From: Vitrella brassicaformis CCMP3155
Taxonomy: Eukaryota > Protista > Chromerida
Assembly (NCBI GenBank): GCA_001179505.1
Contig: CDMY01000424.1
Span: forward strand, 1 to 64,000
Length of the DNA stretch: 64,000 bases
Reading direction: 5' to 3'
The notes beneath the pieces were generated by a model, which ran no database searches, was not told where the DNA came from, and was given only the letters and a program-made list of their open reading frames with translations. Of this stretch, positions 29,677 through 53,600 are shown one piece after another. Every line of letters starts with the position of its first letter. The first letter of the stretch is position 1. The translations under genes were made by a program, and so were the position numbers.

Positions 29677-30589
29677 ATGAACACCACTCGTGTGAAGATC
29701 ACGTGCGTCGGGCCTCCGCGGAGCGGCAAGTCGTTTATCTCCAATGTGTTGGCAGAGATCTGCGAGGCGCCTTCCTCACGCTACCGACCCACCGTAGGCG
29801 TTCGAATTGTCGAGGTGGAGAGAGAGAAAGTGACCTGTGAGCTCTGGGACGTGTCAGGAGATCAGAGGTCAGCACACATCTGCCTGGGTCATTCATCGCA
29901 ATTGTCCTCATTCTCACTCTGCGTTGTGTTGCGGTGCGTTTTACATGTTCAGATACTCATCGTGTTGGCCAGCGATTCAGCAGGGCGTGTCTGGAGCACT
30001 TTTTGTGTACGACGCAGAGGTGCAGACAGCTGACCTCGAGACCTGGTAAAGGAACACACGGCACACCGCACACAGCATGACATGGAGCTGCTGCGTTGTC
30101 TGTCTGTCTGTCTGTCTGTCTGCAGGTACCATTCGTTCGCGACCTCTCTCGGCCTGACGCCCACCCAATGCATGGTGCGAAAGAGCCAGCCAAAGGAAGG
30201 GATCCATGTGACTTTCCTCTTGTCGCTCCGTTCAGCTGGTGTGCAACGTCAAGCGACCCGACATGGAGAGAACACCGCAGCCCCGTAAGTGGCAGAGCCG
30301 TGAGAAGCGATTAGAGTGAGAAGCGTCTGACTCCCCATGGGTGTCCCTCCATGCATCAGCGGGGAGATTTCACGCGCTGAAGGAGTGCGGCAACTTCTGT
30401 GTGGTGTCGGGCAGCACTCTCGCCGCCTTCCGAGAGGCATTCGGTGCCTTTCTCGACAAGGTAAGACCGGCGCTCACTACAAGTGGATTGATCAACACAG
30501 GTGATGGGTCTCCTTGGTGCCCGTGTTGTCAGGCGGTGGCCAGCCAGGAGGCCAAGGTGCGGTCTGAAGAGGAGGCACTGTTGAAGTGA
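29677..30589 (+). CDS. IFT22: Intraflagellar transport protein 22 (Rab-like 5)
   Basis: VKITCVGPPRSGKS, YRPTVGVRIVE, ELWDVSGDQR|YSSCWPAI, W|YHSF, matching the RABL5/IFT22 pattern. Confidence 0.85.
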
Positions 30590-31430: not shown

Positions 31431-31543
31431 TGCGCCTTTGCGTTCCCGCGCCCTAGCTGCCCCTTCCGTCCAGCCGTCCCTCCTTCCATCAGTCGTTTCC
31501 CCCTCCTCCAGAACGTGTGCCTGGCTCCTGATCTCCCCTGACG

Positions 31544-32008
31544 ATGCCGAAGAAATCTAATTTGCAGATCAGCAGCTGGAACTTCAACCCGCACCGAGTG
31601 TTGGCGAATGCGGACATGCGGCCGGGGACCCACCTCATTTGGCAGCGGTCAGTGGGGGGGTCCGAGGAACAGCTCAATGAGCACATCAATCAAGCCCTGA
31701 TGCGAAGCCAACCACCACAACAGCCGGTGAGTGTGACGCACACGAATGCGTGATGCATCGACAGAATGAACGAAGAGCAGCACCGGCTGGCATCTGGCTG
31801 TCTGGCTGTCTGTGTGTGTACCGTCGCTCAGACTCGATGGCAGAGGTACTTCGCGAGGAACAAGGCATTGCTGGCGGCCCTGACGGTGATATTTGGGGGT
31901 GCGTCCGTGGTGATCTACCTGGGTAATACCTGGAAGCCGCCCGGCTTCACCGACAAGAGCAGGAAGCTCCGCAAGGAGATTCTCGAGCAGCACTTCCACG
32001 AGGTCTGA
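31544..32008 (+). CDS. Small single-pass membrane protein (~120 aa)
   Basis: Two exons (intron 31727-31831, phase 0) giving MPKKSNLQ...QQP|TRWQRYF...LLAALTVIFGGASVVIYLG...HFHEV*. Confidence 0.7.
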
Positions 32009-32908
32009 CGGCTGCCTGCCTGCCTGCCTGGCGTGTCTGTCCACCCTCCTTGTTTTGCGGAGGGCTGGGCTGCGAGGGAGGGAAGGAGGGCTGGGGTGGG
32101 GTGGGCGGCTGTCCATGGAAGGCGGGGCGTGTGTATTGACTGTTTGCTGACAGACCTTTCATGTCTGGTGGGCTGTCTTGCAGTTTGAGTGTGTACAATC
32201 AGTCAGTGAGTGTGTTCCGTGTACCCTTGCTTTGCTGTTGCCACTTGTGCCTGCTGTGGGAGGGAGACGAGGCACACAGACACACCACAGCACCACGGGT
32301 GCAGTTGCTGCGAAGAGAGAGAAAGGCGAGATGTATCAGTTTTTGTGGGTGTGGTTGTAGTTGATCGACAGTATGTTGCAAGACCCTGCAACGACCACCC
32401 AAGTTTGTCAACTGTGGATTCACTCTGTAACCACAGCCGAATCAACGGTCCCATCCATAGTCACGCCATCACATGTCGGCTGACCCACACATCACTGACT
32501 GTTAATTCGCTCCTTTCCGCGTTGTATGTAAAACTCTTTTTGACGCTTGTGACAAGGATACACAGGTACGCCAGGCCACAGTCATCATATATGGGCGAAA
32601 AATACTCTCGACCAGCACCACAGAGGCACACTGAATGACTGTACACACGCAAATCAGTGTCGCATTAGGTCCATCGGGCCCCCCCGAGCCCCCACTGCTG
32701 CACGCCACACCTCTCTGCACACCAACATGCACTGCACAGACCCCGGTGAAGGCGTACTCACGATACAGCTGCATTGGCCAGAGGGAGAAAACCGCACCGA
32801 AAAGAGCGGGCCTACCACTGGTGGTGATACAGATGCCGACTCGGATCGAGCAGGAGGCACAATCACGCCACGAAGGATTGCGATAAGGCCGGCCGTCTGT
32901 CTGTCTTG

Positions 32909-35129
32909 TCATCGTCTGGCCGGCAGCACAGGCGGTGGGTTGTCGTGCTCCAGACGCTCGATGCCAAGCAGCTTGAGTGCCCACTTTTCATAGTAGGGGT
33001 CCGTGTCGCCCGTGTAGACCTTAAACAGGAAGTACTGCACGGCACGGCGGTGGGACACGCAAAGGAAAAAGATGAGGGCACGGCACCGACATAGATAGAC
33101 ACTACATTGTGTCTGTGTGCCTGTGTGTACCTTCTCGAAGGCGATCTTGGCGAGTTGCGCCCACTTGCCCCGGCTGTGCCACGCCACGTTCCTTGGTGGA
33201 AGCTGGGGAAGAGCCAGGAAGACAGCCCCTTCGTCGCCGAAGTCAGTGATACACAACGCATTGAGCGACGGGATCTCCTTGGCCTCCTCGCCGCACATCA
33301 GAGAACCTATGTTGTGTGCCGTTGCCGTACCCATCGTCTCTATCATGTAACTGACAGGCAGAGGAAGCAACACATGGAATGAATGAATGAATGAACGCGC
33401 TTTGGGTCTTTCCTTTCTCACCCACCCGGTCTTGGGTGCTCCCGTGGCGACCGGCGTGGTCTCGACGGGCGGGATGGCGGTAGCCACACCAACGACGAAG
33501 ACATTCTTGAATGCGGGGTTCTGCTGCATGGCGTTGCACAGCACGCACCCCTTGGCGTTGGTCAGCCCCAACTCGGCAAGCTTGGGGTTTTTGAGGAACC
33601 CCACGCCCTCAAAGGGAGGAATGAAAACGCCATAATCGAAGGGGAGATCGTGCTTCATGGGCGGGTCGGAGGACGCCTGGCGCTCGGGCAGCTGCGTGAG
33701 ATGGACTGTGTCGGGTGAAACCTCATCGATGTGGGCGTTGGTAATCCACTTGATGTCGCGCTCCCGGAACAGACTCTCAATCAGACCTGATGGATGACAC
33801 AAACAACGAAACAACGATCTCTGTGCCCTCAGCTGGTCCCGGGCGTCTTACATGCGTACGTACCTTTGCTGTCGCCAACACCTCCCAATCCCAGGTGGCC
33901 CACATATGGTTCAGAGCTCACTGACACGCACGGAAGCGCACCAACGCGAGCATCGGATGGAAGGGATGTGCACATCATGGTGGTGCCTACCGTAAGTAAT
34001 AGGGACGTATTTTCTCAGCTTCTTTTTTCGCAGCTCGTTGTCCATTATCATTGCGTGCTCGTATGCCGGCCCAAAGCACGACGCCCCCGGCGCTGCGCCA
34101 ACCACTATAGCGCCCTTCTTCTCCCGGGCCACTTTGTCACAAAAGGCATCCCACTTCTCAGCGGCCTTTTCAGCGTGCTCGCCGTTGCAGATCGACTCCG
34201 TGTAGAAGGCCGGTCCGAGACCTTTCACCTGGTCAAAGGCCAAGCGAGGGCCTGTTGCAACCACCTGACACCAAGGCAGCGAATGCGAAAGCGTTTGAAG
34301 GCTGCCTGCACTGCCTTTGAGAGCGTGTGTGTGGCAGAGCCACGGCCGTAGCGATGCACCAGGTAGTCGTAGTCAATCTGCTGCAGGTCCTCGGGTGCCC
34401 CCTCGCCCATGTCCCTGACGTAGAGGCGGTTGTCGGACGGCTCGAGCCGCTCAACGCTCGCGTGGCGGAAGTTGATGCCCTTCCTGTTCAACACACTGCC
34501 CAAGTCGAGCCTGATCTCATCTTTGGTCCTCGTACGCACCGCTACCCTGGCACACAGGCATATCGATTGGCGGCAGCGAAACCATGAGTGTGTGGGTCAC
34601 GTCACTTGGTGTGCTTACCATGGGCACGAGGGCGTGAATTCAAAGTACGGGCGGCTTGACAGGAGCGTGAGGGACACAGGGCGGCCATTGAGGGCCGCCT
34701 GGCGTTCCTTGACCACACCCATTATGTCGAATGCAGTGGACACGCCACCAATCCCCCCACCCACGACGACTATTTTGATGGGCTCCATGCCGCCAGCAAC
34801 GTCGACAGGAGCATCAGGCGTCGCCACTGACGTCGACGCGCTGCTCGACAGGCGATGACGGACAGAGGGCCTCGGCACAATAGACGACTGCACACACACA
34901 ACAGGGAGAGCGTGAAGGTTGCAAATGCAAGCATGCACGCACGCGTGACCCTCGCAGCACCCACCAGCAGCAAACCCAGCCTCACCTTAGCTGCGGGTGG
35001 TTCGCCCTGCGCACCACCGTCTCTGCCACGGAATCTCCAGGGCTGGTGATGCGATGAGAAGGATGGATGAGCAGTGAAAGCTGCCGTCGAGTGCCACAGT
35101 GTCATCACTGCCAAGCAGAATAGCACCAT
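32909..35129 (-). CDS. sqr: Type I sulfide:quinone oxidoreductase with N-terminal signal peptide plus transit-like peptide
   Basis: IVVVGGGIGG, FTPSCPW, ESICNGEHA, GASCFGPAYE, SSEPYVGHLGLGGVGDSK, APKTG|YMIE, LNALCITDFGD, PQLPPRNV, GKWAQLAKIAFEK|YF; all three type I cysteines are present. In-frame upstream ATGs also exist at 35177 and 35330. Confidence 0.92.
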
Positions 35130-35382
35130 GCCGCCAGCAGAGTGGCGGGGCCGGTCAGTCTTGCGCTTTCTCGCCATCAGCAGGCTCTCTGGGAAGCCGA
35201 ATGGAGTAAGCTGCTGGTCCAGAGAAGCCTGTTGGACTTGTTGGACCCGGGAAGAGATCTGCTGCTCTAAGCTCGCAAACGTTGGGACAACGCCCAGAGA
35301 ATCGTTTCCGGGCTGGGCGTCGCTTTTCATCACTTCCGACAGCCCAAGTGAAGAACATCATCGCCTGATTCATCAAAACAAG

Positions 35383-38300
35383 ATGGCGAGAGGAAGCCCT
35401 CATGTCACTCCCAGATCTGGGACGAAGATAGTAGGCATGCATTGCTGTTCGTGTGTTGTTGACAAGCCAGAGCTGGCCAATGGGGCCGACAATTCATCGG
35501 GTCGTGCCACACGTGTGTCGGTGTGTGGTGCAGGTTATTATTGGAGGCGTGGCTGGAGGGGCCACTGCGGCTGCTCGACTCCGACGCCTCGATGAGAACT
35601 GTCAAATCGTTATGTTTGAGCGCGGTGAGGAAAAAAAAGAGGCGGGCCGCATGCAGACGAGGGCCACTGACCGATCGGTGTTCGCGTTGCTTTTAGGGCC
35701 GTACGTGAGCTTCGCCAACTGTGGACTCCCGTAGGCACCAAGGGGCGGACACACGCACATACACAGAGGGTGTGGTGTGCTGTTTGTCTTACCACAGTTA
35801 CTACGTGGGTGGCATCATCGAGAAGGCCGATGACCTGCTGGTGACCACACCCATGCGGCTGGTCCATCGATACAACGTAGGCATGACACCAGAGAGAGAG
35901 AGAGAGAGAGAACGTGGGTCGTGTTGACATTCAAACCGGTTTGTCTGTCTGTGTGTGTGTGTGTGGTCAGGTCGATGTCCGCATCCAGACGGAGGTGATT
36001 GGCATCGACGCCACAAACAAGACCGTCAAGGCTAAACACATCTCTTCAGGTACAGTAGGAGGAGCACCATCGGGACCAATCTCTCTCCATATCCATCCAT
36101 CGTGCACTCACGTGTGTGTGGTCACCGTCAACCAGGCGAGATGTACGAGGAGACGTACGACTATGTGCTCCTGTCCCCCGGTGCCGAGCCGATCCGTCCG
36201 CCGCTTCCCGGCATCGACCTGGGTGGCGTCTTCTCTGTGCGGTCGATCCCCGACGTGCAGCGCATCGTCAGCTGGTGCAAGGACCCGTCGCGCGCTGAGC
36301 GCCTCAAGAAGGGCACTGCCGTCGTGGTTGGCGGCGGCTTCATCGGACTCGAGGTACACACACCGTGACCACCCTGCCGTGTGCATCAGTTTGTATACGG
36401 ATGGGTTTGTTTCTGTGAGTGTGCAGATGGCGGAGAATTTGGACCATCTGGGCATGAAAGTCGTGGTGGTAGAAATGCTCCCACAGGTGGGCGGGTGGGC
36501 GGACACAGGAGAGGGCACGTGTGGCTGTCTTCCTGTGATGTGTTTCCCACCGTCTGTGTGGATCAGTTGATGCCCCCACTCGATTATGAGGTGCATGATA
36601 CACACACCGACGGCACAGCCACTGTGGATCGGCGAAAGGAGGCATTTGTGCGTCGTGTGCTTGTGTTGTGTGTGCAGATGGCAGTGACGGTTCAGGAGCA
36701 TGTCATTCGTCGCGGCGTGGAGTTGTGTCTCGGAGATGGTGTGGCTGGTTTTGAGCAGATCGACAACACTGACAGGTCAGACCATCTGCAGCCCACCTAA
36801 AGTGGCGCACTTGCGGATTCAGTGTGGCTATGTGTCCTTGGCAGGCTGACCGTCAAGACCAGCAGTGGGCGCGCAATTCCCTGTGATTTGGCCATCCTGT
36901 CTATCGGCGTCAAGCCTGAGAGCAAACTCGCGCAGATGGCCGGACTCAAACTGGTACGAACACGACACACCTTCGTGCAGCCAGCCTGTCTCTCCGTCTG
37001 TGCGTGTGTGGCTCCACCAGGGTTTCCGGGGCTCCATCATCACTGACGAGCGGATGCGCACGTCAGACCCTTCAATCTATGCGGTTGGCGATGCCGTGCA
37101 GATCAAGGATTTCGTCCTGAAGGTCGACACCCTGGTGCCGCTGGCTGGTCCCGCCAATCGGCAAGCCCGCGTGGCGGCCGACAACATGATGGGCCGAACG
37201 GAGAGCACCTACCGTGGGTGCCAGGGCACGGCCGTGTGTGGTGTGTTTGGGTGGACGCTGGCCATGACGGGCGCCACGCAAAAGACACTCGACAGGCACA
37301 ACTACGGGTCAGTGAGGGTAGCACAATGGATGGATGGATGCGGCACAGCAACACGGACAGATGGATGGACGCAAGTGCGTGTGGATGGATGGTGCGGGCA
37401 GGTCCTACGGCTGTGTTTATGCCCACCCACTCAATCACGTCGGGTAGGAACAGACACACGATCCATTCATTCACTGACTGCTGGTGAGGGGGGCGCTGCT
37501 TGATGACTTACTGACACGTCAGCTACTACCCGGGTGCCAAGAGCGTCCACATCAAACTGGTCTTCGACACCAAGACACGCAAAGTGCTCGGCGCACAGGT
37601 GAGGGAGGGGGGGAGGGAGGGAGGGAGGGAGGGAGCGAGGCATGCAGATGGGTAGAGAGGTGCGGGATCTGCATATGGCCGGACGTCTGTGGGATTGCTG
37701 GTTGGCTGCTGCAGGCGTGTGGTGTGAGTGGAGTGGAGAAGCGCATCGACGTGCTGTCGACGTACATCCAGATGGGCGCCACAGTGGACGACCTGGCTGA
37801 GGCCGAACTGTGCTATGCCCCACAATATGGCGCTGCCCGCGACCCCATCAACCACATAGGGATGATTGCACAGAACTTCCTCGAGGGCGACTACGCGCCT
37901 CAGTCAACGCCAGGTGGGGTGGGGCGCCTGATGTGAGTGACCCCAAACCACTCCCTCACACACCATCAGCCATCTGGGCTCTGACGATGTTGTGTCTTCA
38001 GAGACGCTCAAGGAGGGTATCATCCTCGACGTTAGAAGGTGTGAAGACATCCACAAGGCAGCAAGCAAGAAAGAATGAATCATTGTCGGTGTGCGCGTGC
38101 GTGTATCGGTTGGTTGGCGGTATGTCCGTGTATGCAGCGACAAGGAGATCGACAAGACGCACGAGAAGATTGAGCACTCCATAAGGGTGCCACTCGACTT
38201 CCTCAGAGCCAAAATCGATGAGCTGCCCAAGGGCACACCCATACACGTACACAACACACCCACACACACACACACACAGGGGGCGAGACAGCCCTCGCTC

Positions 38301-40263
38301 AACTCATTCGTTCCTCTCTGTCGGCTGTGTTTGTCGTCCATCCATGCACGATTCAGACTGTGTGTCGGGCGGGCCAGCGTGCCTACGTGGCTTGCAGGAT
38401 CCTCCGACAGCTGGGATACAACGCATCGTAAGCNNNNNNNNNNNNNNNNNNNNNNNNNNNNNNNNNNNNNNNNNNNNNNNNNNNNNNNNNNNNNNNNNNN
38501 NNNNNNNNNNNNNNNNNNNNNNNNNNNNNNNNNNNNNNNNNNNNNNNNNNNNNNNNNNNNNNNNNNNNNNNNNNNNNNNNNNNNNNNNNNNNNNNNNNNN
38601 NNNNNNNNNNNNNNNNNNNNNNNNNNNNNNNNNNNNNNNNNNNNNNNNNNNNNNNNNNNNNNNNNNNNNNNNNNNNNNNNNNNNNNNNNNNNNNNNNNNN
38701 NNNNNNNNNNNNNNNNNNNNNNNNNNNNNNNNNGGATGGATGGTGCGGGCAGGTCCTACGGCTGTGTTTATGCCCACCCACTCAATCACGTCGGGTAGGA
38801 ACAGACACACGATCCATTCATTCACTGACTGCTGGTGAGGGGGGCGCTGCTTGATGACTTACTGACACGTCAGCTACTACCCGGGTGCCAAGAGCGTCCA
38901 CATCAAACTGGTCTTCGACACCAAGACACGCAAAGTGCTCGGCGCACAGGTGAGGGAGGGGGGGAGGGAGGGAGGGAGGGAGGGAGCGAGGCATGCAGAT
39001 GGGTAGAGAGGTGCGGGATCTGCATATGGCCGGACGTCTGTGGGATTGCTGGTTGGCTGCTGCAGGCGTGTGGTGTGAGTGGAGTGGAGAAGCGCATCGA
39101 CGTGCTGTCGACGTACATCCAGATGGGCGCCACAGTGGACGACCTGGCTGAGGCCGAACTGTGCTATGCCCCACAATATGGCGCTGCCCGCGACCCCATC
39201 AACCACATAGGGATGATTGCACAGAACTTCCTCGAGGGCGACTACGCGCCTCAGTCAACGCCAGGTGGGGTGGGGCGCCTGATGTGAGTGACCCCAAACC
39301 ACTCCCTCACACACCATCAGCCATCTGGGCTCTGACGATGTTGTGTCTTCAGAGACGCTCAAGGAGGGTATCATCCTCGACGTTAGAAGGTGTGAAGACA
39401 TCCACAAGGCAGCAAGCAAGAAAGAATGAATCATTGTCGGTGTGCGCGTGCGTGTATCGGTTGGTTGGCGGTATGTCCGTGTATGCAGCGACAAGGAGAT
39501 CGACAAGACGCACGAGAAGATTGAGCACTCCATAAGGGTGCCACTCGACTTCCTCAGAGCCAAAATCGATGAGCTGCCCAAGGGCACACCCATACACGTA
39601 CACAACACACCCACACACACACACACACAGGGGGCGAGACAGCCCTCGCTCAACTCATTCGTTCCTCTCTGTCGGCTGTGTTTGTCGTCCATCCATGCAC
39701 GATTCAGACTGTGTGTCGGGCGGGCCAGCGTGCCTACGTGGCTTGCAGGATCCTCCGACAGCTGGGATACAACGCATCGTAAGCAGACAGACAGACCCAC
39801 CGCACTGACTCACCCTAAGTAGTTTCGATCCGTGCAACCTTCCTTCCCTCTCTGGTTGATGTTGGAATGGATGGATGCCTGCAGGTACGTGAATGGCGGG
39901 TGGCACACGTGGAAGGTAAGTAAGACGCCCAGGCTGGCAGGCAGGCAGGCAGGGACGACAGGAGATGCTAATGCGTTCTCACCCACCGACTTGCTGTGTC
40001 CATGTGTCTTTGCATAGGTACTCAACCTCCCGCTCGACAAGCTGTGCGAACGCCCAGAGGCACCTGACGATGACGAGTCCTTCCCAAAAAGCTGGGGTGC
40101 CGACATTGAGCTGAGTGGTAAGACAAACAGCACACCACACCCTCTGTGTATGTGCGTGTGTCCGCCCCTTGGTGCTGCCTACGTGTACGTCTGTCTGTTT
40201 GTGTGCGTCTTGTTGATTGCAGGCAAGGATTGCCATGACATGGTCTACCGACGCATTTGGTGA
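35383..40263 (+). CDS. CoA-disulfide reductase-rhodanese fusion (Npsr/CoADR-RHD type persulfide reductase); 3' part duplicated around an assembly gap
   Basis: KI|VIIGGVAGGATAAARLRR, SFANCGLP|YY, VVGGGFIGLE, YAVGDA, LAGPANRQAR, YYPGA, LCYAPQYG; rhodanese ILDVR...CRAGQRAYVACRIL...NGGWHTW. The last exon is uncertain. Confidence 0.92.
37383..39784. repeat. Apparently exact 1.05-kb duplication (37383-38433 = 38734-39784) flanking a 300-N gap
   Basis: Identical ORF translations at a constant 1351-bp offset; most likely a contig-overlap artefact. Confidence 0.85.
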
Positions 40264-41223: not shown

Positions 41224-42933
41224 ATGCCGCGGCTGTGTGTGGCCCTCTTCCTCCTTGCATCGGCTGCCTTCGCCGCAATCGACTTCCTCCCCACTGCCGA
41301 TCAGAACGGTAAGCCACGCGGTGTTCTCTCTTGACAACATCCTTGTTGAGCCTTGTGCTTTCTCAGGTGTCAGTGACCATGAGGTCTGTATTATCGGCGC
41401 CGGCCCCTCAGGCGTGGGCGCGGCTCACCACCTCGTGCAAAAGGGCTACTCCAACATCCTGATGCTGGAAAAGCTCGACAGAATCGGCGGCAAATGCAGG
41501 GACATCGAGCGAGTGGACAACGCGAACGGAAAGCCCGTCAACCGCACCTACCCCCTCGGTCAAATTGTCATCATACGGGACTACGAAGAGATCCGCGAGC
41601 TCGCCGACATCTACGGTCAGAAATTCGAACTGTTCGCGTTGGGTGTGCCGCAAGACTTCTACGTCGACTTCAACGCCAAACCGCTGTTCACCCCTGCTCC
41701 ACCCTCATGGCCCACCATCGCCAGCTTCAGCCCCCTCGAACTCAACAGCATCGAGGACATCGAGGAGATCACGGTGGCCCTCACCGCCGCTACGGCGTAT
41801 ACGGCCATATGGAAGTCTTACGTCGCCATTGACGAGAAGACCGGCGAGCCGGATCCAAAGCGACCTCTCGGCGATGAGCCGACTCTTTCATCCATCGACT
41901 TCGACCGCTACCCAGAGCTTGCCGACCCGGCCAACAAGTTCATTGCAGACCGCTTCACAGAGTACGGCCTCGGTCCGAAGCACATCGAGTTCATGCAGAG
42001 AGCCCAATTCCCGCTGGAAGCGTCCGGCTACCTTTCTGCCGATTTCACTCCGATGGCGTATTTCTTCAAGGCCTTCACGCCACCTCTGCTGGTGGAGGGT
42101 GTATTGGGCACCATTCAAAGAATAGTCGGAGGCTGTACAGCGCTTCTGGAGGCCATGGTGGACACGCTGTCTGCCAAGGGAAAGCTAGAGGTCTTGCTCA
42201 GTGCGGAGATCGTCAACACTGTGCGAGAGCCCGATCAGCCGTCACTGGTCCAGCTGTCGGACGGCACTGAAAGAACCTGCGATCGGATCATCGTAGCGTT
42301 TCCTCAGATCACGGCGGACATGCAGTTTTTGGACTTGGACGAGGAGGAGAGCGATGTGTTCGGGAGAGTTTTCATCGCGCCATACGCCTCCACGCTTCTG
42401 GACTTCTCGTACGAGAAAATGCCCAATACCAAGAGCTCCAGGCTATATGGCAATCTCGATACGTCGGTCGAGCCTCACGCTTATCGATCAGTCGTCGGTA
42501 AAGGCCAGCCGGCGGTGATAGCCGCACCTTACGGTTCGCAGGCAGGAGCCGGCCTTCTGATCTACCAGAGTTATGATCGACAGCAGGGACTTTGGAACGA
42601 GACGCTTAAGCAGGACAGCGTGCAGATCGTGACGGACATGTTCTTCGACGGCGATGCGAGTGAGTACAAGGCCAACTTGACCGAAGTCGACTTTTGGACC
42701 TACGTGAGTATTCATTCAAAGGGAGAGGGACCCCATCATCTGTTCACACTTTGTATCCTTCCTGCATGCAGTTTCCCCACGTGAGTGGCGAAGAGATGCG
42801 GGCGGGCTTCTACCAACGGCTGGAGGCGCTGCAGGGCAACAGGAAGACCTACTTCACAGGCGGGCTGTGCAACTTCGACACCCTCGAGCTTTCCATGCTC
42901 TACAGCCGACACCTGGTTAAGACATACTTCTGA
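41224..42933 (+). CDS. Secreted FAD-dependent oxidoreductase, polyenoic/linoleic fatty acid isomerase-like (PAI/PFI family)
   Basis: Signal peptide MPRLCVALFLLASAAFA; VCIIGAGPSG, LEKLDRIGGKC; C-terminus WTY|FPHVSGEEMRAGFYQRLEALQGNRKTYFTGGLCNFDTLELSMLYSRHLVKTYF resembles P. acnes PAI. Two introns. Confidence 0.75.
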
Positions 42934-46697: not shown

Positions 46698-49605
46698 GTT
46701 TGTAATTGGCGTGGCGTGGATGGATGGATAGGAGCTCACTCACCTAGGGATGCCCAGTGGGGAGTGAGTGAAGAGAGGGTCCTGATTGATGGTGGGTGAG
46801 TGAGGGACACAGAATATGCCTGGTGAGGGCCATGGCCATCTCGTTCACTCAACCCCCCATTTCAGTTGCTGATGGTTAAAATTCGTCATCGATGGTGGTG
46901 CGCGTGTTGCGACTACTGACAGATGGGATACATGGTGTTGACGGCAGACTTGTGTCCATATACGTGTGTGTCTGAAGGCCATGATGATTGGTCCTTGCAT
47001 GGATCCATGCACCGTGTGTGATCATGCACACAACACCCATACGGACACACACAGGCCGACGTGCCAGGCTTGGCAACCCTGGCTGGCCACACGAGCCCAT
47101 GCGATCCTCAGCCGAGCCCGCGGCTGGGGCTCGAACACACCCAAATTCTACCACTAGACACCCTGACTGGCTACAGATGCTCGGATGGACACATCGATGT
47201 ATCTAGAGACACCCAGATCGGATCAGACAGACACGCACTGTATGTGGTGTGCTGTTGGCTTATCACGGGGTCTCAGGCCATCACAGCCGCACCGCTACAA
47301 GTAGTGTGTGAGAAGAATGTAGTTGATACAGTCTGTCTGTCTGCCTGCCTCGCCTCGGCGCACACCGACATGCACCGAAATGACCGACAAAAACGACTTA
47401 GGGTGTAGGGTTTGGGCAGCCACTCATCCATACACTCGAGTAACCAATATCGATACACTCCACTCCATCCATCCATCCATCCAAACAAACAAATTAACAA
47501 ACAAACAAAAAACAAACAGGACGCACACAGACAGCGAGATAGAGAGAGAGACAGACAGACACGGACGAACAAAGACAAGAGACCCACTCCCCCCCTCCCA
47601 CACCCTCATGTAATGGCACGAACGGGTGCACAGGCGAAAGAGGCCGGCAACAGCGAATGGAGCGATCAATAGACTCGTACGCACAGCCGGGCAGACAGAC
47701 AGGGAGACAGACAGACAGATTAGATACACTATCACTCTTTGTCTGCCCGGCCTACGTGCAATACATGCNNNNNNNNNNNNNNNNNNNNNNNNNNNNNNNN
47801 NNNNNNNNNNNNNNNNNNNNNNNNNNNNNNNNNNNNNNNNNNNNNNNNNNNNNNNNNNNNNNNNNNNNNNNNNNNNNNNNNNNNNNNNNNNNNNNNNNNN
47901 NNNNNNNNNNNNNNNNNNNNNNNNNNNNNNNNNNNNNNNNNNNNNNNNNNNNNNNNNNNNNNNNNNNNNNNNNNNNNNNNNNNNNNNNNNNNNNNNNNNN
48001 NNNNNNNNNNNNNNNNNNNNNNNNNNNNNNNNNNNNNNNNNNNNNNNNNNNNNNNNNNNNNNNNNNNNCAGCCCAGCCCAGTATGCACACCACGAACAGG
48101 CCAGGCAGAGAGAGCAATCCATCCATCCATCCATTCTCGTGTCAGTCAAGCACCCCCCCTCCCTCCCTCCCTCCCTCCCTTTGTTCCCATGACTGACTAG
48201 TGTCCATCCAGTACACATAGACAGATAGCGGTCAGTCGGTGGTGCATTCGATCAACAGCAGCAGCAGCAGCCGCCGCCTGTCTTTCGATTATCGACCCAG
48301 AGCTCGGTCGCCGGCAGGCAGCACTCGATCCATACGGCATGCAGGCATGCATGGCCACACCGTGGCACCGTATCGCCAAGCAAAAGACCCACCCTGCAGC
48401 ACCACACAGCACACTCATCGGCTAACTAGACAAACTCCCTCCTCTCTCTCTCCCTCCTTCCCTCCCCCCCGAATTCATCTCAATCAGAACACAAAAGCGG
48501 TCATCCACACAGACGCACTCACGCATTCACTCGAAGCAAAAACGGCATAGGGGTCCAGTCAAGTCAACAGCCTGCCAGCCCGCCAGCGTGAGCGATTCCC
48601 CACCTCTCCGTCCCTCACGCACAGACATCCATACATCCATCCATCCATGGGGGTGCCTCATGAGTGCAGGCAGGCAGCAGCAGCAGCAGCAGCAGCCCAC
48701 GAGACAGGTCGGTCCATCCATCCATCCATGTAGCACCACACCACACCACAGCACCACGGTAAATGAACCATCGTCCGTCGGTCGGCCGGTCAGGCGCAAT
48801 GGATGCACAACGAGCTGAGCTAGTCATCCATCCATCCATCCCAGCTATGCGTCATGTGTGTCCATTCGATCATTCAGACATGCGAAATCACCCATGTGGT
48901 TTGTGTACGCGTGAGTGGGTAGGGGGGGGAGAGTGCAGCAGTTGGGGGCCATCGGAGAAAGCGAGACAGCCGCCAACCATTGACGGTAGACGTGTGCAAT
49001 CAAGCCATTTCATTCAAAGTGGGAAAATACAAAAAAATCATAGTGCGTGCATCCATTCGCCATCCATCCATCCATCCGTCGACCGACCGACCAGCCATCC
49101 ATCCATCCATCCACAACAAGAGGCCAAAACTCACGACAAGATAGCTTGATTGGTCCCAACCTTATGTGGGTGAGGAGCTATCCAAAGAGACAAAAAGAGG
49201 CTCCATGCAATCAACGCTTTGCTGCCGTGCTGTCTGTCTGTTGTGGTGTGTACATATGTGTGGGCAATAAGGGCATTCTTTCATGCATATCATGTCATGT
49301 CAGGTATCAAAGGAGGGGAGGGGTAAAGGCACAGCACACTATCACCTGTAAGTATACTTACGGGTACCCGCCGGTACATGTAAGTAGTGCATGCATGGGG
49401 AGCAAGTGGGCAAGTCAGTGAGTCAGTCGAGTGCACAACCAACGAAGGAGTGCTATTCCTCTAACACGTACGTGCGTACGCTTAATTACACCATCAGCAG
49501 CGACACACACACAACCAACCAACCAATCAACCCAGCGCGACAACACGACACGACACGGCACACCATGGGCAGCAGAGAGAGAGGGAGCGACGAGCGAAAA
49601 AGTTA

Positions 49606-50673: not shown

Positions 50674-53600
50674 TCACTCCTCGTCGCCCTCGTCCACCCG
50701 TGTCAGGATCGACAGCTGCCTGCTCGCAGCAATAGCCCGCTTCAGTGCTCGGGGGGACACCCTTGCTCGCCCCCGCTCGCCGGCCAGCGCCACACATGAG
50801 GTGAAGACGTCGTGTGCACTGGGCCACTCCGCGCGCCTCAGATCCTCCTGCAGATGGGCCGTGGAGATCATCAGGTGCTCGCGGGGCTCGTGTGTGGGGC
50901 ACCAGTGAGAGGTAAAGCGCTGCAGACAGACAGAAAGAGGGATGTGTGTGGAGAGCATTTCGTGGTATGTGTGTGTGCTCGGGTCGGTGGCGTGCGTACT
51001 GTACGTACCTGTACAAGTGGCATGAGTGGGTAGAGAGGTGATGCCGCGCCCCTCTTCTTGATGGTGGCGAGGAATTGGTCCATCGACACCGGCTTCATCG
51101 GCACACCCAAGTCGCCGAGCCAACGCTCGCGCTCAGAACTGATCGGTCGTCAAAACACAAACAGGTACGTACACACAAACAATTAGTGCACTCACTCTGC
51201 CGTCCGTGTTGTGTTGCCTGCCTCTATCTAGTGTGTGCTGTAAATAATGTGTCCGTACTTGGTGATGAGCTGTGGGTTGGCGAGATGGTAGACCCAATGG
51301 CGACGGTTCTCGGTCAAACACAGCCGGGCCTGCACAGACAAGACATGGAAGAAGAACAACGAATGCATCCATCCACTCACTCACTCGTGTAGGCACACTC
51401 TCTCCTCTCACCATCATGGCAGCGACGACATCGACGGGCGTCCCACCCAGAGGCGCTGTCACGACGGGCGGCATCTCCCCCTCCTGGAGCATGGCCATCA
51501 TCATTGCCCCGCCCACGTCCCTCTCGTCCACGTAGCCCGTCATCAGGCTCGTCATGCCGCTCGGCACGCGGTAGATGGTGCAGGGCAGGCCCCTCGCCCG
51601 CGCCTTCTTGAGCACCTGCTCCGTCGACCAGTTGGTCCACGGGAGGCCGAATTGCTCGGGCGGGCTGACCTCGCGCAGGCGCTTGGTGTCGAGGGTGCTG
51701 GCCTCGCGGAGCTCCTTGCCGTGGCCAAGGACGAACTCGGGGAAGAGGGTGAGGGACGACACAAAGTGGAGGGGCTTGAGCTTGCTTGTGGTGCAGAGCC
51801 GCACGATCTCCTTCATCGCGAACGTGTTCTCGCGCAGGCGGTCGTAGCTCTGCATGAACGACTGGCCGTTGGTGAAGCCCGTGTGGAAGACCAGGTCGAT
51901 CCGCTCGCACAGCTCGGCAAAGAAGTGCTCGGCCAGGTGGTTGGGCTTGAGGCCGAGATGCCGCCGCGTCACGTGGCCGGGCACGATCATCAGGCGGCTC
52001 TGGTACTCGTCGTTCCAGATGCCCGCTTCCTGGCACGCCTCACGCACCTGCCGCAGACCCTCCTCGTCGCTGTTGGTCTGCACCAGGCAATGCACCGTCA
52101 GCTGCTCCTTGGCCTGCAGCAGCGCCACGGTGAGGAACCGGCCCACTGCTGACGTCGCATCCGTCACGAGCACGTNNNNNNNNNNNNNNNNNNNNNNNNN
52201 NNNNNNNNNNNNNNNNNNNNNNNNNNNNNNNNNNNNNNNNNNNNNNNNNNNNNNNNNNNNNNNNNNNNNNNNNNNNNNNNNNNNNNNNNNNNNNNNNNNN
52301 NNNNNNNNNNNNNNNNNNNNNNNNNNNNNNNNNNNNNNNNNNNNNNNNNNNNNNNNNNNNNNNNNNNNNNNNNNNNNNNNNNNNNNNNNNNNNNNNNNNN
52401 NNNNNNNNNNNNNNNNNNNNNNNNNNNNNNNNNNNNNNNNNNNNNNNNNNNNNNNNNNNNNNNNNNNNNNNNNNNATTGCCATCATCAGCGCCCCGCCCA
52501 CGTGCCTCTCGTCCACGTAGCCCGTCATCAGGCTCGTCATGCCGCTCGGCACTCGGTAGATGGTGCACGGCAGGCCCCTCGCCCGCGCCTTCTTGAGCAC
52601 CTGCTCCGTCGACCAGTTGGTCCACGGGAGGCCGAATTGCTCGGGTGGGCAGACCTCGCGCAGGCGCTTGGTGTCGAGGGTGGTGGCCTCGCGGAGCTCC
52701 TTGCCCTGGCCAAGGACGTACTCGGGGAAGAGGGTGAGGGACGACACAAAGTGGAGGGGCTTGAGCTTGCTGGTGGTGCACAGCCGCACGATCTCCTTCA
52801 TCGCGAAGGTGTTCTCGCGCAGGCGGTCGTAGCTCTGCATGAACGACTGGCCGTTGGCGAAGCCCGTGTGGAAGACCAGGTCGATCCGCTCGCACAGCTC
52901 GGCAAAGAAGTGCTCGGCCAGGTGGTTGGGCTTGAGGCCGAGATGCCGCCGCGTCACGTGGCCGGGCACGATCATCAGCCGGCTCTGGTACTCGTCCTTC
53001 CAGATGCCCGCTTCCTGGCACGCCTCACGCACCTGCCGCAGACCCTCCTCGTCGCTGTTGGTCTGCACCAGGCAATGCACCGTCAGCTGCTCCTTGGCCT
53101 GCAGCAGCGCCACGGTGAGGAACCGGCCCACTGCTGACGTCGCATCCGTCACGAGCACGTGTCTGCTCTTGCGTGGTGGGTGGGGGGGGAGGGCGGGGAG
53201 GGAGGCGACGTCGAACTTGAAGCTCTTGGCGACCTTGTTGACGTCCGTCTCGGGGTCCCTCTTCCTGGTGCCGTCGTCCGTCGCGCTCACCCCGCTGCTG
53301 TCGGGGTTGGTGGCTGCTGTTGAGAAGGGGGCGATGGGGTCCATCACGCCCTCCTGCTCACGTTTGCCCACCAGCTGCCCAGCCAAAGCGTCCAGCGAGG
53401 GGTTGTCGAACATACACGAGGGCGGCAGGTCGATGCCCGTCATCCGCCGCACGTGCTCGCGGAACTCGGTCATGCCGATCGAGTCGAGGCCCAGATCGAG
53501 CAGTCTGCCGACGGGTGACGGCCGCTCCTCCCCACCCACCACCGAGTGGGCGACGGACGCCAGGGCGTCGGCCAGGGCGGTCCTGCCCGTGTCGTTGGTG

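Follow-up and report, generated by a model that had tools for sequence, protein, structure and literature searches.

Organization of the locus

Analysis of a 64,000-nucleotide window of the Vitrella brassicaformis CCMP3155 genome (contig CDMY01000424.1, positions 1 to 64,000) revealed two divergent genes encoding a sulfide:quinone oxidoreductase (SQR) on the minus strand and, on the plus strand, a coenzyme A-disulfide reductase (CoADR)-rhodanese fusion, hereafter the reductase. The two genes are arranged head to head, with an ATG-to-ATG distance of 205 bp, and the 5′ end of the SQR cDNA at 35251 leaves 131 bp to the reductase ATG at 35383. An earlier first-pass annotation had placed the SQR start at 35129 and estimated a spacer of at most ~250 bp, in agreement with the 205 bp found here and the 253 bp measured from its own start codon. 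The strands of both genes and the reductase ATG that it assigned are likewise borne out by the gene models. The features of the pair are as follows.

31435-35251, minus strand: SQR transcript, from blastn of the cDNA contigs L001 and L002; a contig of RNA run X12 also ends at 35251
32909-35177, minus strand: SQR coding region, 8 exons, all GT-AG, 7 introns, stop codon 32911-32909
35178-35382, no strand: putative divergent promoter region common to both genes, 205 bp; the SQR cDNA leaves 131 bp of it (35252-35382) uncovered
35383-40263, plus strand: reductase gene (CoADR/NPSR-rhodanese), 20 exons, all GT-AG, 19 introns, stop codon 40261-40263, 610 residues

Contigs of one RNA run (X12) and three DNA runs (X1, X2 and X3) were placed on positions 32900-38433. 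In each of the DNA runs X2 and X3, a single contig covers 32900-35764 and contains both gene starts, so that the adjacency is real and not a product of scaffolding. Both transcripts were found in X12, at a word depth of roughly 30 for the SQR versus 2-11 for the reductase. Overall, both genes are intact, expressed and nuclear. They are of bacterial type and have many introns (7 coding introns in the SQR and 19 in the reductase), as the first-pass annotation had recognized. The intron density per kb of coding sequence is 10.4 for the reductase versus 4.2 for the SQR, a 2.5-fold difference that fits an older resident beside a later arrival.

Gene structure and N-terminal leader of the SQR

From the first ATG of the cDNA (35177), which is in frame and 16 codons upstream of the start at 35129, the SQR comprises 562 residues. 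The exons and the leader are as follows.

35177 (or 35129)-34986, 34887-34619, 34546-34360, 34264-33991, 33920-33864, 33786-33426, 33350-33131 and 33034-32909, minus strand: SQR exons 1 to 8
34789-35177, minus strand: SQR N-terminal leader of 97 residues, predicted from sequence and hydropathy, split by the intron 34985-34888

The cDNA contigs L001 and L002, which share the 5′ start 35251, are 100% identical to the window by blastn and are spliced at every modelled junction. They are the sources of the 464-residue database protein P0001, which is 100% identical to residues 82-545 of the SQR model. RNA of run X12 contains the same seven joints, possibly from the same data as L001 and L002 and hence not independent of them. 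The mRNA has a 3′ untranslated region of 1.4 kb (31435-32908, minus strand), which holds one spliced intron (31830-31727).

The SQR leader opens with a basic segment, MARKRKTDRPRHSAGG, followed by a 12-residue hydrophobic core, MVLFCLAVMTLW, that leads into ..STAA/F. After AA/F, a stretch of 62 residues rich in Ser, Arg, Pro and Ala precedes the Rossmann fold of the SQR (MEPIKIVVVGGG). The bipartite plastid signal of chromerids consists of an endoplasmic reticulum (ER) signal and a transit peptide (PMC6668581). The leader appears to be laid out in the same way, from which we infer plastid targeting.

The minus-strand gene encodes a type I SQR

Homology search using phmmer revealed that the SQR is most similar to the type I enzymes of Acidithiobacillus ferrooxidans (PDB 3SZ0, E 1.9e-105) and Aquifex (PDB 3HYV, E 3.4e-96), with much weaker matches to Acidianus SQR (PDB 3H8I, E 3e-21) and the human type II enzyme (E 3e-5). 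The NCBIfam model of type III SQR scored only 61.6 bits, compared to its cut-off of 525. The N-terminal FAD-binding Rossmann motif KIVVVGGGIGG is present in a Pyr_redox_2 fold, with Pfam PF07992 matched at 4.2e-09 on P0001, and the alignment with 3SZ0 starts from residue 6. The segments ESIC, GASCFGPAYE and NALCITDFGD pair with SIC, GASCFGPAYE and NAVCFADMGD of 3SZ0, respectively, and the predicted catalytic residues are encoded as follows.

34189-34187, 34078-34076 and 33253-33251, minus strand: catalytic Cys codons, equivalent to Cys128, Cys160 and Cys356 of A. ferrooxidans SQR in the 3SZ0 alignment
34177-34175, 34060-34058 and 33897-33895, minus strand: equivalents of His132, Glu166 and His198 in the 3SZ0 alignment

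Judged by these alignments, the enzyme is a type I SQR, the class assigned by the first-pass annotation. Type I SQRs oxidize H2S to sulfane sulfur and pass the electrons to a membrane quinone. The usual eukaryotic SQR is the distant type II enzyme of mitochondria.

The best relatives of the window SQR are bacterial, at 48-52% identity, and belong to Pseudomonadota wherever they are named. The closest Atlas clusters are those of ‘Sulfide-quinone reductase’ and ‘Type I family’ from Pseudomonadota, and no eukaryotic SQR relative was found among the best 120 hits or the nearest Atlas clusters.

The plus-strand gene encodes a CoADR-rhodanese fusion

The reductase is distributed over 20 exons, two of which encode the predicted active-site cysteines.

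35383-35430, 35534-35624, 35697-35730, 35798-35876, 35971-36049, 36136-36353, 36427-36486, 36567-36590 and 36678-36775, plus strand: exons 1 to 9
36845-36953, 37021-37307, 37402-37443, 37523-37598, 37715-37913, 38002-38038, 38138-38246 and 38357-38427, plus strand: exons 10 to 17
39885-39915, 40018-40117 and 40223-40263, plus strand: exons 18 to 20, of which exon 18 finishes the rhodanese domain
35720-35722, plus strand: putative redox Cys55 (SFANCGLPYY), equivalent to Cys43 of Shewanella NPSR
38363-38365, plus strand: putative rhodanese Cys533 (TVCRAGQRAY), equivalent to the rhodanese Cys of Bacillus anthracis CoADR-RHD (PDB 3ICR)

RNA of run X12 backs the joints at introns 9-12 and has loose ends at introns 14 and 17. 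The remaining junctions find support in a gap-free alignment to 18 full-length homologues, which spans residues 15 to about 565. Exons 19 and 20 encode a 46-residue tail that has no homologue, and are modelled on GT-AG sites and the open frame only. No protein or cDNA of this very gene was found by a representative search with exon 11, a metagenome scan and two exon-seeded profile searches, all of which returned relatives of at most 55% identity.

Among solved structures, exon 11 best matches BaCoADR-RHD (PDB 3ICR, 2e-26), Shewanella NPSR (PDB 3NTD, 4e-25) and the Enterococcus faecalis CoA-persulfide reductase (CoAPR; PDB 8A56, 5e-17), all ranked above plain CoADRs and NADH oxidases. In addition, the top NCBIfam match of the reductase exons is the CoA-disulfide reductase model TIGR03385, and Pfam Pyr_redox_2 is matched as well. 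These matches agree with the CoADR/NPSR-rhodanese identity proposed in the first-pass annotation, which had also recognized both cysteines, in SFANC and CRAGQR. The segment PYVSFANCGLPYY, which carries the SFxNCGLPY motif, aligns with residues 35-46 of NPSR, including Cys43. The segment TVCRAGQRAYVACRIL aligns with TCQLGMRGYVAARML of 3ICR, with a weak E value for a query of 23 residues. The rhodanese Cys also falls in the CxxGxR column of the 18 full-length homologues, which carry Pfam PF00581. Moreover, Glu199, which comes after Rossmann strand two (VVVVEM), points to a possible preference for NADH.

The family members that have been characterized bind CoA tightly and act as NAD(P)H-dependent persulfide/polysulfide reductases that have no CoA-disulfide reductase activity (PMC9405070, PMC7969121). 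NPSR favours per- and polysulfides above disulfides (PMC7969121), and CoAPR of E. faecalis, which is induced by sulfide, converts CoASSH to CoA and H2S and presumably protects the CoA pool (PMC9405070).

Only 15 residues, basic and free of acidic side chains, precede the reductase fold, and an in-frame stop codon lies upstream of the ATG. As previously suggested, the modelled enzyme has no evident leader, although a short presequence may be present, or a further exon may lie upstream.

An assembly artefact within the reductase gene

The 3′ part of the reductase gene is interrupted in the assembly by a gap, on either side of which the segments 37383-38433 and 38734-39784 match perfectly, with 0 mismatches over 1051 bp.

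38434-39784, no strand: assembly artefact, composed of a gap of 300 N (38434-38733) and a spurious duplicate (38734-39784) of 37383-38433

A genuine tandem duplication of exons 12-17, which would be in frame, was considered and rejected. In an X12 RNA contig, the end of exon 17 (38427) runs directly into CGTGAATGGCGGGTGGCACACGTGGAAGGT, a string unique to 39888 within exon 18, so exons 12-17 occur only once in the mRNA. In the DNA runs X1, X2 and X3, contigs are unbroken over 37383 (from 35972 to about 37590), and the next DNA contigs pass 38433 and extend exactly 360 letters further with no branch. The last letters of each of those contigs are 35766-35795 in reverse complement, equal to 40115-40144, and this is the end required if 39785 directly follows 38433. 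The word depths on either side are equal in the three DNA runs (21.9/22.3, 11.7/12.3 and 5.84/6.42), compared to the about 1.5-fold depth that a true duplication would show, and no go-back joint was reported in the mapping of the X12 and X1-X3 contigs on 32900-38433. Once the duplicate is collapsed, ‘intron 17’ shrinks from 1457 to 106 nt, inside the span of 67-116 nt of the other 18 introns, and the frame stays open. Altogether, 38434-39784 is spurious, and the flanking letters are continuous and in frame.

Several loose contig ends, three in the DNA runs (35520, 37340 and 38335) and two in the RNA run (33290 and 36989), resembled possible paralogues; each lies in low-complexity sequence or is represented by a single contig. 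Three further gaps of 300 N in the window (18478-18777, 47769-48068 and 52176-52475) have flanks that could hide similar duplicates.

The reductase gene also contains a perfect inverted repeat of 61 bp, with one arm (35735-35795) making up nearly all of intron 3 and the other (40115-40175) at the exon 19/intron 19 donor. It has just two copies within the window and shows a twofold DNA word depth. When inverted, the acceptor end of intron 3 (..CTTACCACAG) becomes the donor CTGTG/GTAAG of intron 19, and one of the two introns may have originated by inverted duplication of the other. The two arms, about 3 kb apart, could pair in the pre-mRNA.

Relatives of the reductase

The closest relatives of the reductase, at 53-55% identity, come from Guillardia, cyanobacteria and Verrucomicrobiota. 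CoADR-rhodanese fusions are present in Chlamydomonas reinhardtii (CHLRE_06g271200v5), Volvox, Gonium, Tetradesmus, Monoraphidium and Guillardia theta, as well as in Corallochytrium, Trimastix and Stygiella; the family is thus widespread and not peculiar to this lineage. The window reductase falls outside the green-algal clade, and in three trees it sits on a long, poorly supported and unresolved branch. A grouping with Corallochytrium and a EukProt protein appeared in one tree and was lost in a later one, and no specific donor was identified. No common donor of the two genes is seen, as the SQR relatives are of the Pseudomonadota type at no more than 52% identity whereas those of the reductase are the organisms given above. 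In the literature, we found nothing relevant on a eukaryotic type I SQR, a eukaryotic CoADR-rhodanese enzyme or a chromerid SQR.

A proposed role of the gene pair

We tentatively propose that the pair represents two arms of one co-regulated sulfide and sulfane-sulfur stress response under common control. The type I SQR would most likely be sent to the complex plastid, or at least to a compartment reached through the ER, where it would oxidize H2S to sulfane sulfur and deliver the electrons to quinone. By analogy with its bacterial relatives, the leaderless reductase would employ NAD(P)H, bound CoA, the redox Cys and the rhodanese Cys to convert CoA persulfide, other small persulfides or polysulfide to the thiol and H2S. 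The SQR would thereby reduce the sulfide level, and the reductase would clear persulfide from the CoA and thiol pool outside the SQR compartment. The pairing would have arisen within this lineage, with no inheritance of an operon. We infer the substrates, the compartments and the co-regulation of the pair from the enzyme families, the leaders and the spacer.

Several points weigh against this proposal, the first of which comes from a survey of linkage in prokaryotes, metagenome loci and two green algae, with other chromerids not among them. Within 10 kb on either side of the reductase homologue, an SQR was found beside it in none of 80 prokaryotic genome loci (1.33 Mb in total), and none was near it in 10 metagenome loci or in the two green-algal loci (Chlamydomonas and Tetradesmus), the neighbours of which are unrelated genes. 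The first-pass annotation had named unrelated donors with no conserved linkage as refuting its module, and these counts (0/80, 0/10 and 0/2) go against the module. Second, the RNA word depth is about six-fold unequal between the two genes, in the single run X12 and with contig depth being a poor measure of expression. Third, the start of the reductase, and hence its apparent lack of a leader, is taken from a genomic model, the RNA having no 5′ exons 1-8. Finally, the short shared spacer is observed, whereas the activity, localization and regulation of the pair are predicted.

The surveyed neighbourhoods point to sulfur stress for each family separately. The genes most often found near the reductase homologues encode sigma-54 activators (14 loci), SulP sulfate permeases (7) and rhodanese/YgaP proteins (6+3). 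Two bacterial relatives of the SQR are flanked by an ArsR-type regulator, a rhodanese, YgaP, RND pumps, a thioredoxin and a lactamase_B protein, and a CoADR-rhodanese reductase is near neither of them (0/2 loci). The two families thus occupy sulfur-stress neighbourhoods with rhodanese/YgaP in common, and never occur together in the loci surveyed. From the absence of linkage elsewhere, the differing relatives and the unequal intron density, we conclude that the pairing is specific to this lineage and that the two genes were not inherited together.

These same observations suit the strongest alternative, that the two genes are chance neighbours with independent sulfur roles in separate compartments, their adjacency having no regulatory meaning. 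We regard this as less likely, though a serious contender. The lack of linkage in the other genomes examined and the different closest relatives speak for it, as do the intron densities, which suggest different residence times in the genome, and the unequal RNA depth. On the other side, a spacer of 131-205 bp leaves independent promoters physically hard to separate. In addition, by reasoning only, among many thousands of genes a second sulfane-sulfur enzyme would seldom turn up as a random neighbour, which makes it improbable that a persulfide-handling enzyme, of which a genome has few, lies immediately beside the SQR.

Another possibility is a closed cycle, in which the reductase uses NADH and persulfide to form H2S, which diffuses to the SQR and is re-oxidized with reduction of quinone, the net result being a shuttle from NADH to quinone, or a redox valve, with sulfur as the carrier and possibly across compartments. 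The two reactions are opposite and downhill overall according to the established chemistry of the families, the promoter region is shared, and H2S crosses membranes freely. However, the sulfane product would have to return to the leaderless reductase, for which no carrier is evident, and the SQR leader predicts a compartment other than that of the reductase. The pairing also has no precedent in the 90 prokaryotic loci, and the characterized bacterial reductases serve detoxification or sulfur respiration, not a shuttle (PMC9405070, PMC7969121). We therefore consider the closed cycle improbable: as the SQR is routed through the ER and the reductase apparently is not, the stress-response pair is preferred over it. 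A more elaborate version would place a plastid SQR and a cytosolic persulfide reductase on one bidirectional promoter, with H2S as the diffusing carrier that moves electrons from cytosolic NAD(P)H to the plastid quinone pool, serving as a sulfur redox valve in dark, anoxic or sulfidic conditions; we view it as still more doubtful.

Least probable of all is a remnant of a single transferred bacterial operon that acquired its introns later, since, although both enzymes are bacterial-type and adjacent, none of the 80 and 10 prokaryotic reductase loci has an SQR and neither SQR relative has a reductase nearby, the reductase family extends to green algae, a cryptophyte and cyanobacteria whereas no eukaryote appears in the best 120 hits of the SQR, the genes are divergent, and their intron densities are 2.5-fold apart.

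Taken together, the two-gene module suggested by the first-pass annotation holds as regards the intact genes and the short shared spacer, but not as regards linkage elsewhere, common relatives or matching intron density. For the stress-response pair that we favour, co-regulation would offer a route to understanding sulfide tolerance in a coral-reef or sediment alga. Marine-sediment metagenome runs (X7, X13 and X15-X17) contain as much as 64% of the 31-mers sampled from 35971-37382, so the organism or a very close relative lives in sediments, a habitat in which sulfide is plausible. A type I SQR with a plastid-type leader would be unusual for a eukaryote, and bears on the entry of sulfide electrons into the plastid quinone pool. 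In some cyanobacteria, sulfide feeds electrons into the quinone pool.

Neighbouring genes

Downstream of the reductase, an intronless open reading frame of 515 residues (41237-42784, plus strand) stands amid an intron-rich region. It matches Pfam Amino_oxidase and NAD_binding_8, and its best solved match is the ‘putative aminooxidase’ 2B9W (2e-10). A sulfur role was considered for this neighbour and rejected, as it is an amine-oxidase-like flavoprotein that appears to be unrelated. Beyond the 3′ end of the SQR, a small GTPase-like exon with weak Arf/Roc matches (29700-30000, plus strand) is unrelated to sulfur.

Comparison with known systems

The window SQR aligns over its full length with the SQRs of A. 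ferrooxidans (PDB 3SZ0/3T31) and Aquifex aeolicus (PDB 3HYV), the C-terminal membrane-binding helices included. Unlike these two enzymes, it is nuclear-encoded, with 7 coding introns, a leader of 97 residues and about 25 extra loop residues.

The reductase shares its domain order with Shewanella loihica NPSR (PDB 3NTD/3NTA), BaCoADR-RHD (PDB 3ICR) and E. faecalis CoAPR (PDB 8A56), consisting of an FAD/NAD(P)H disulfide-reductase fold, a dimerization domain and a C-terminal rhodanese domain, with a single redox Cys and a CxxGxR rhodanese Cys. Compared to these enzymes, it has 19 introns, a predicted 46-residue tail that has no homologues, and no more than 55% identity to any relative. The same fusion architecture, at 47-55% identity, is found in the algal proteins annotated as ‘rhodanese domain-containing’ in Chlamydomonas, Volvox, Gonium, Tetradesmus, Monoraphidium and Guillardia. 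Most of the green-algal members have N-terminal extensions of 30-40 residues that resemble transit peptides, compared to the 15 residues of the window reductase. We found no characterization of this enzyme family of Chlamydomonas and many other algae in the literature, and it is open to study there.

In E. faecalis, the CstR-regulated cst-like operon, with coaP and rhodaneses, brings sulfide-oxidizing or persulfide-clearing enzymes under one control region (PMC9405070). Bacterial sqr-rhodanese-PDO clusters likewise have a single control region (PMC9163753). Unlike these bacterial clusters, the Vitrella pair consists of divergent eukaryotic genes that form no operon, and its combination of an SQR with a CoADR-rhodanese occurs in none of the 90 prokaryotic loci. 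If co-regulated, the pair would be a eukaryotic counterpart of the bacterial sulfide-response operons, assembled anew from enzymes of separate origin.

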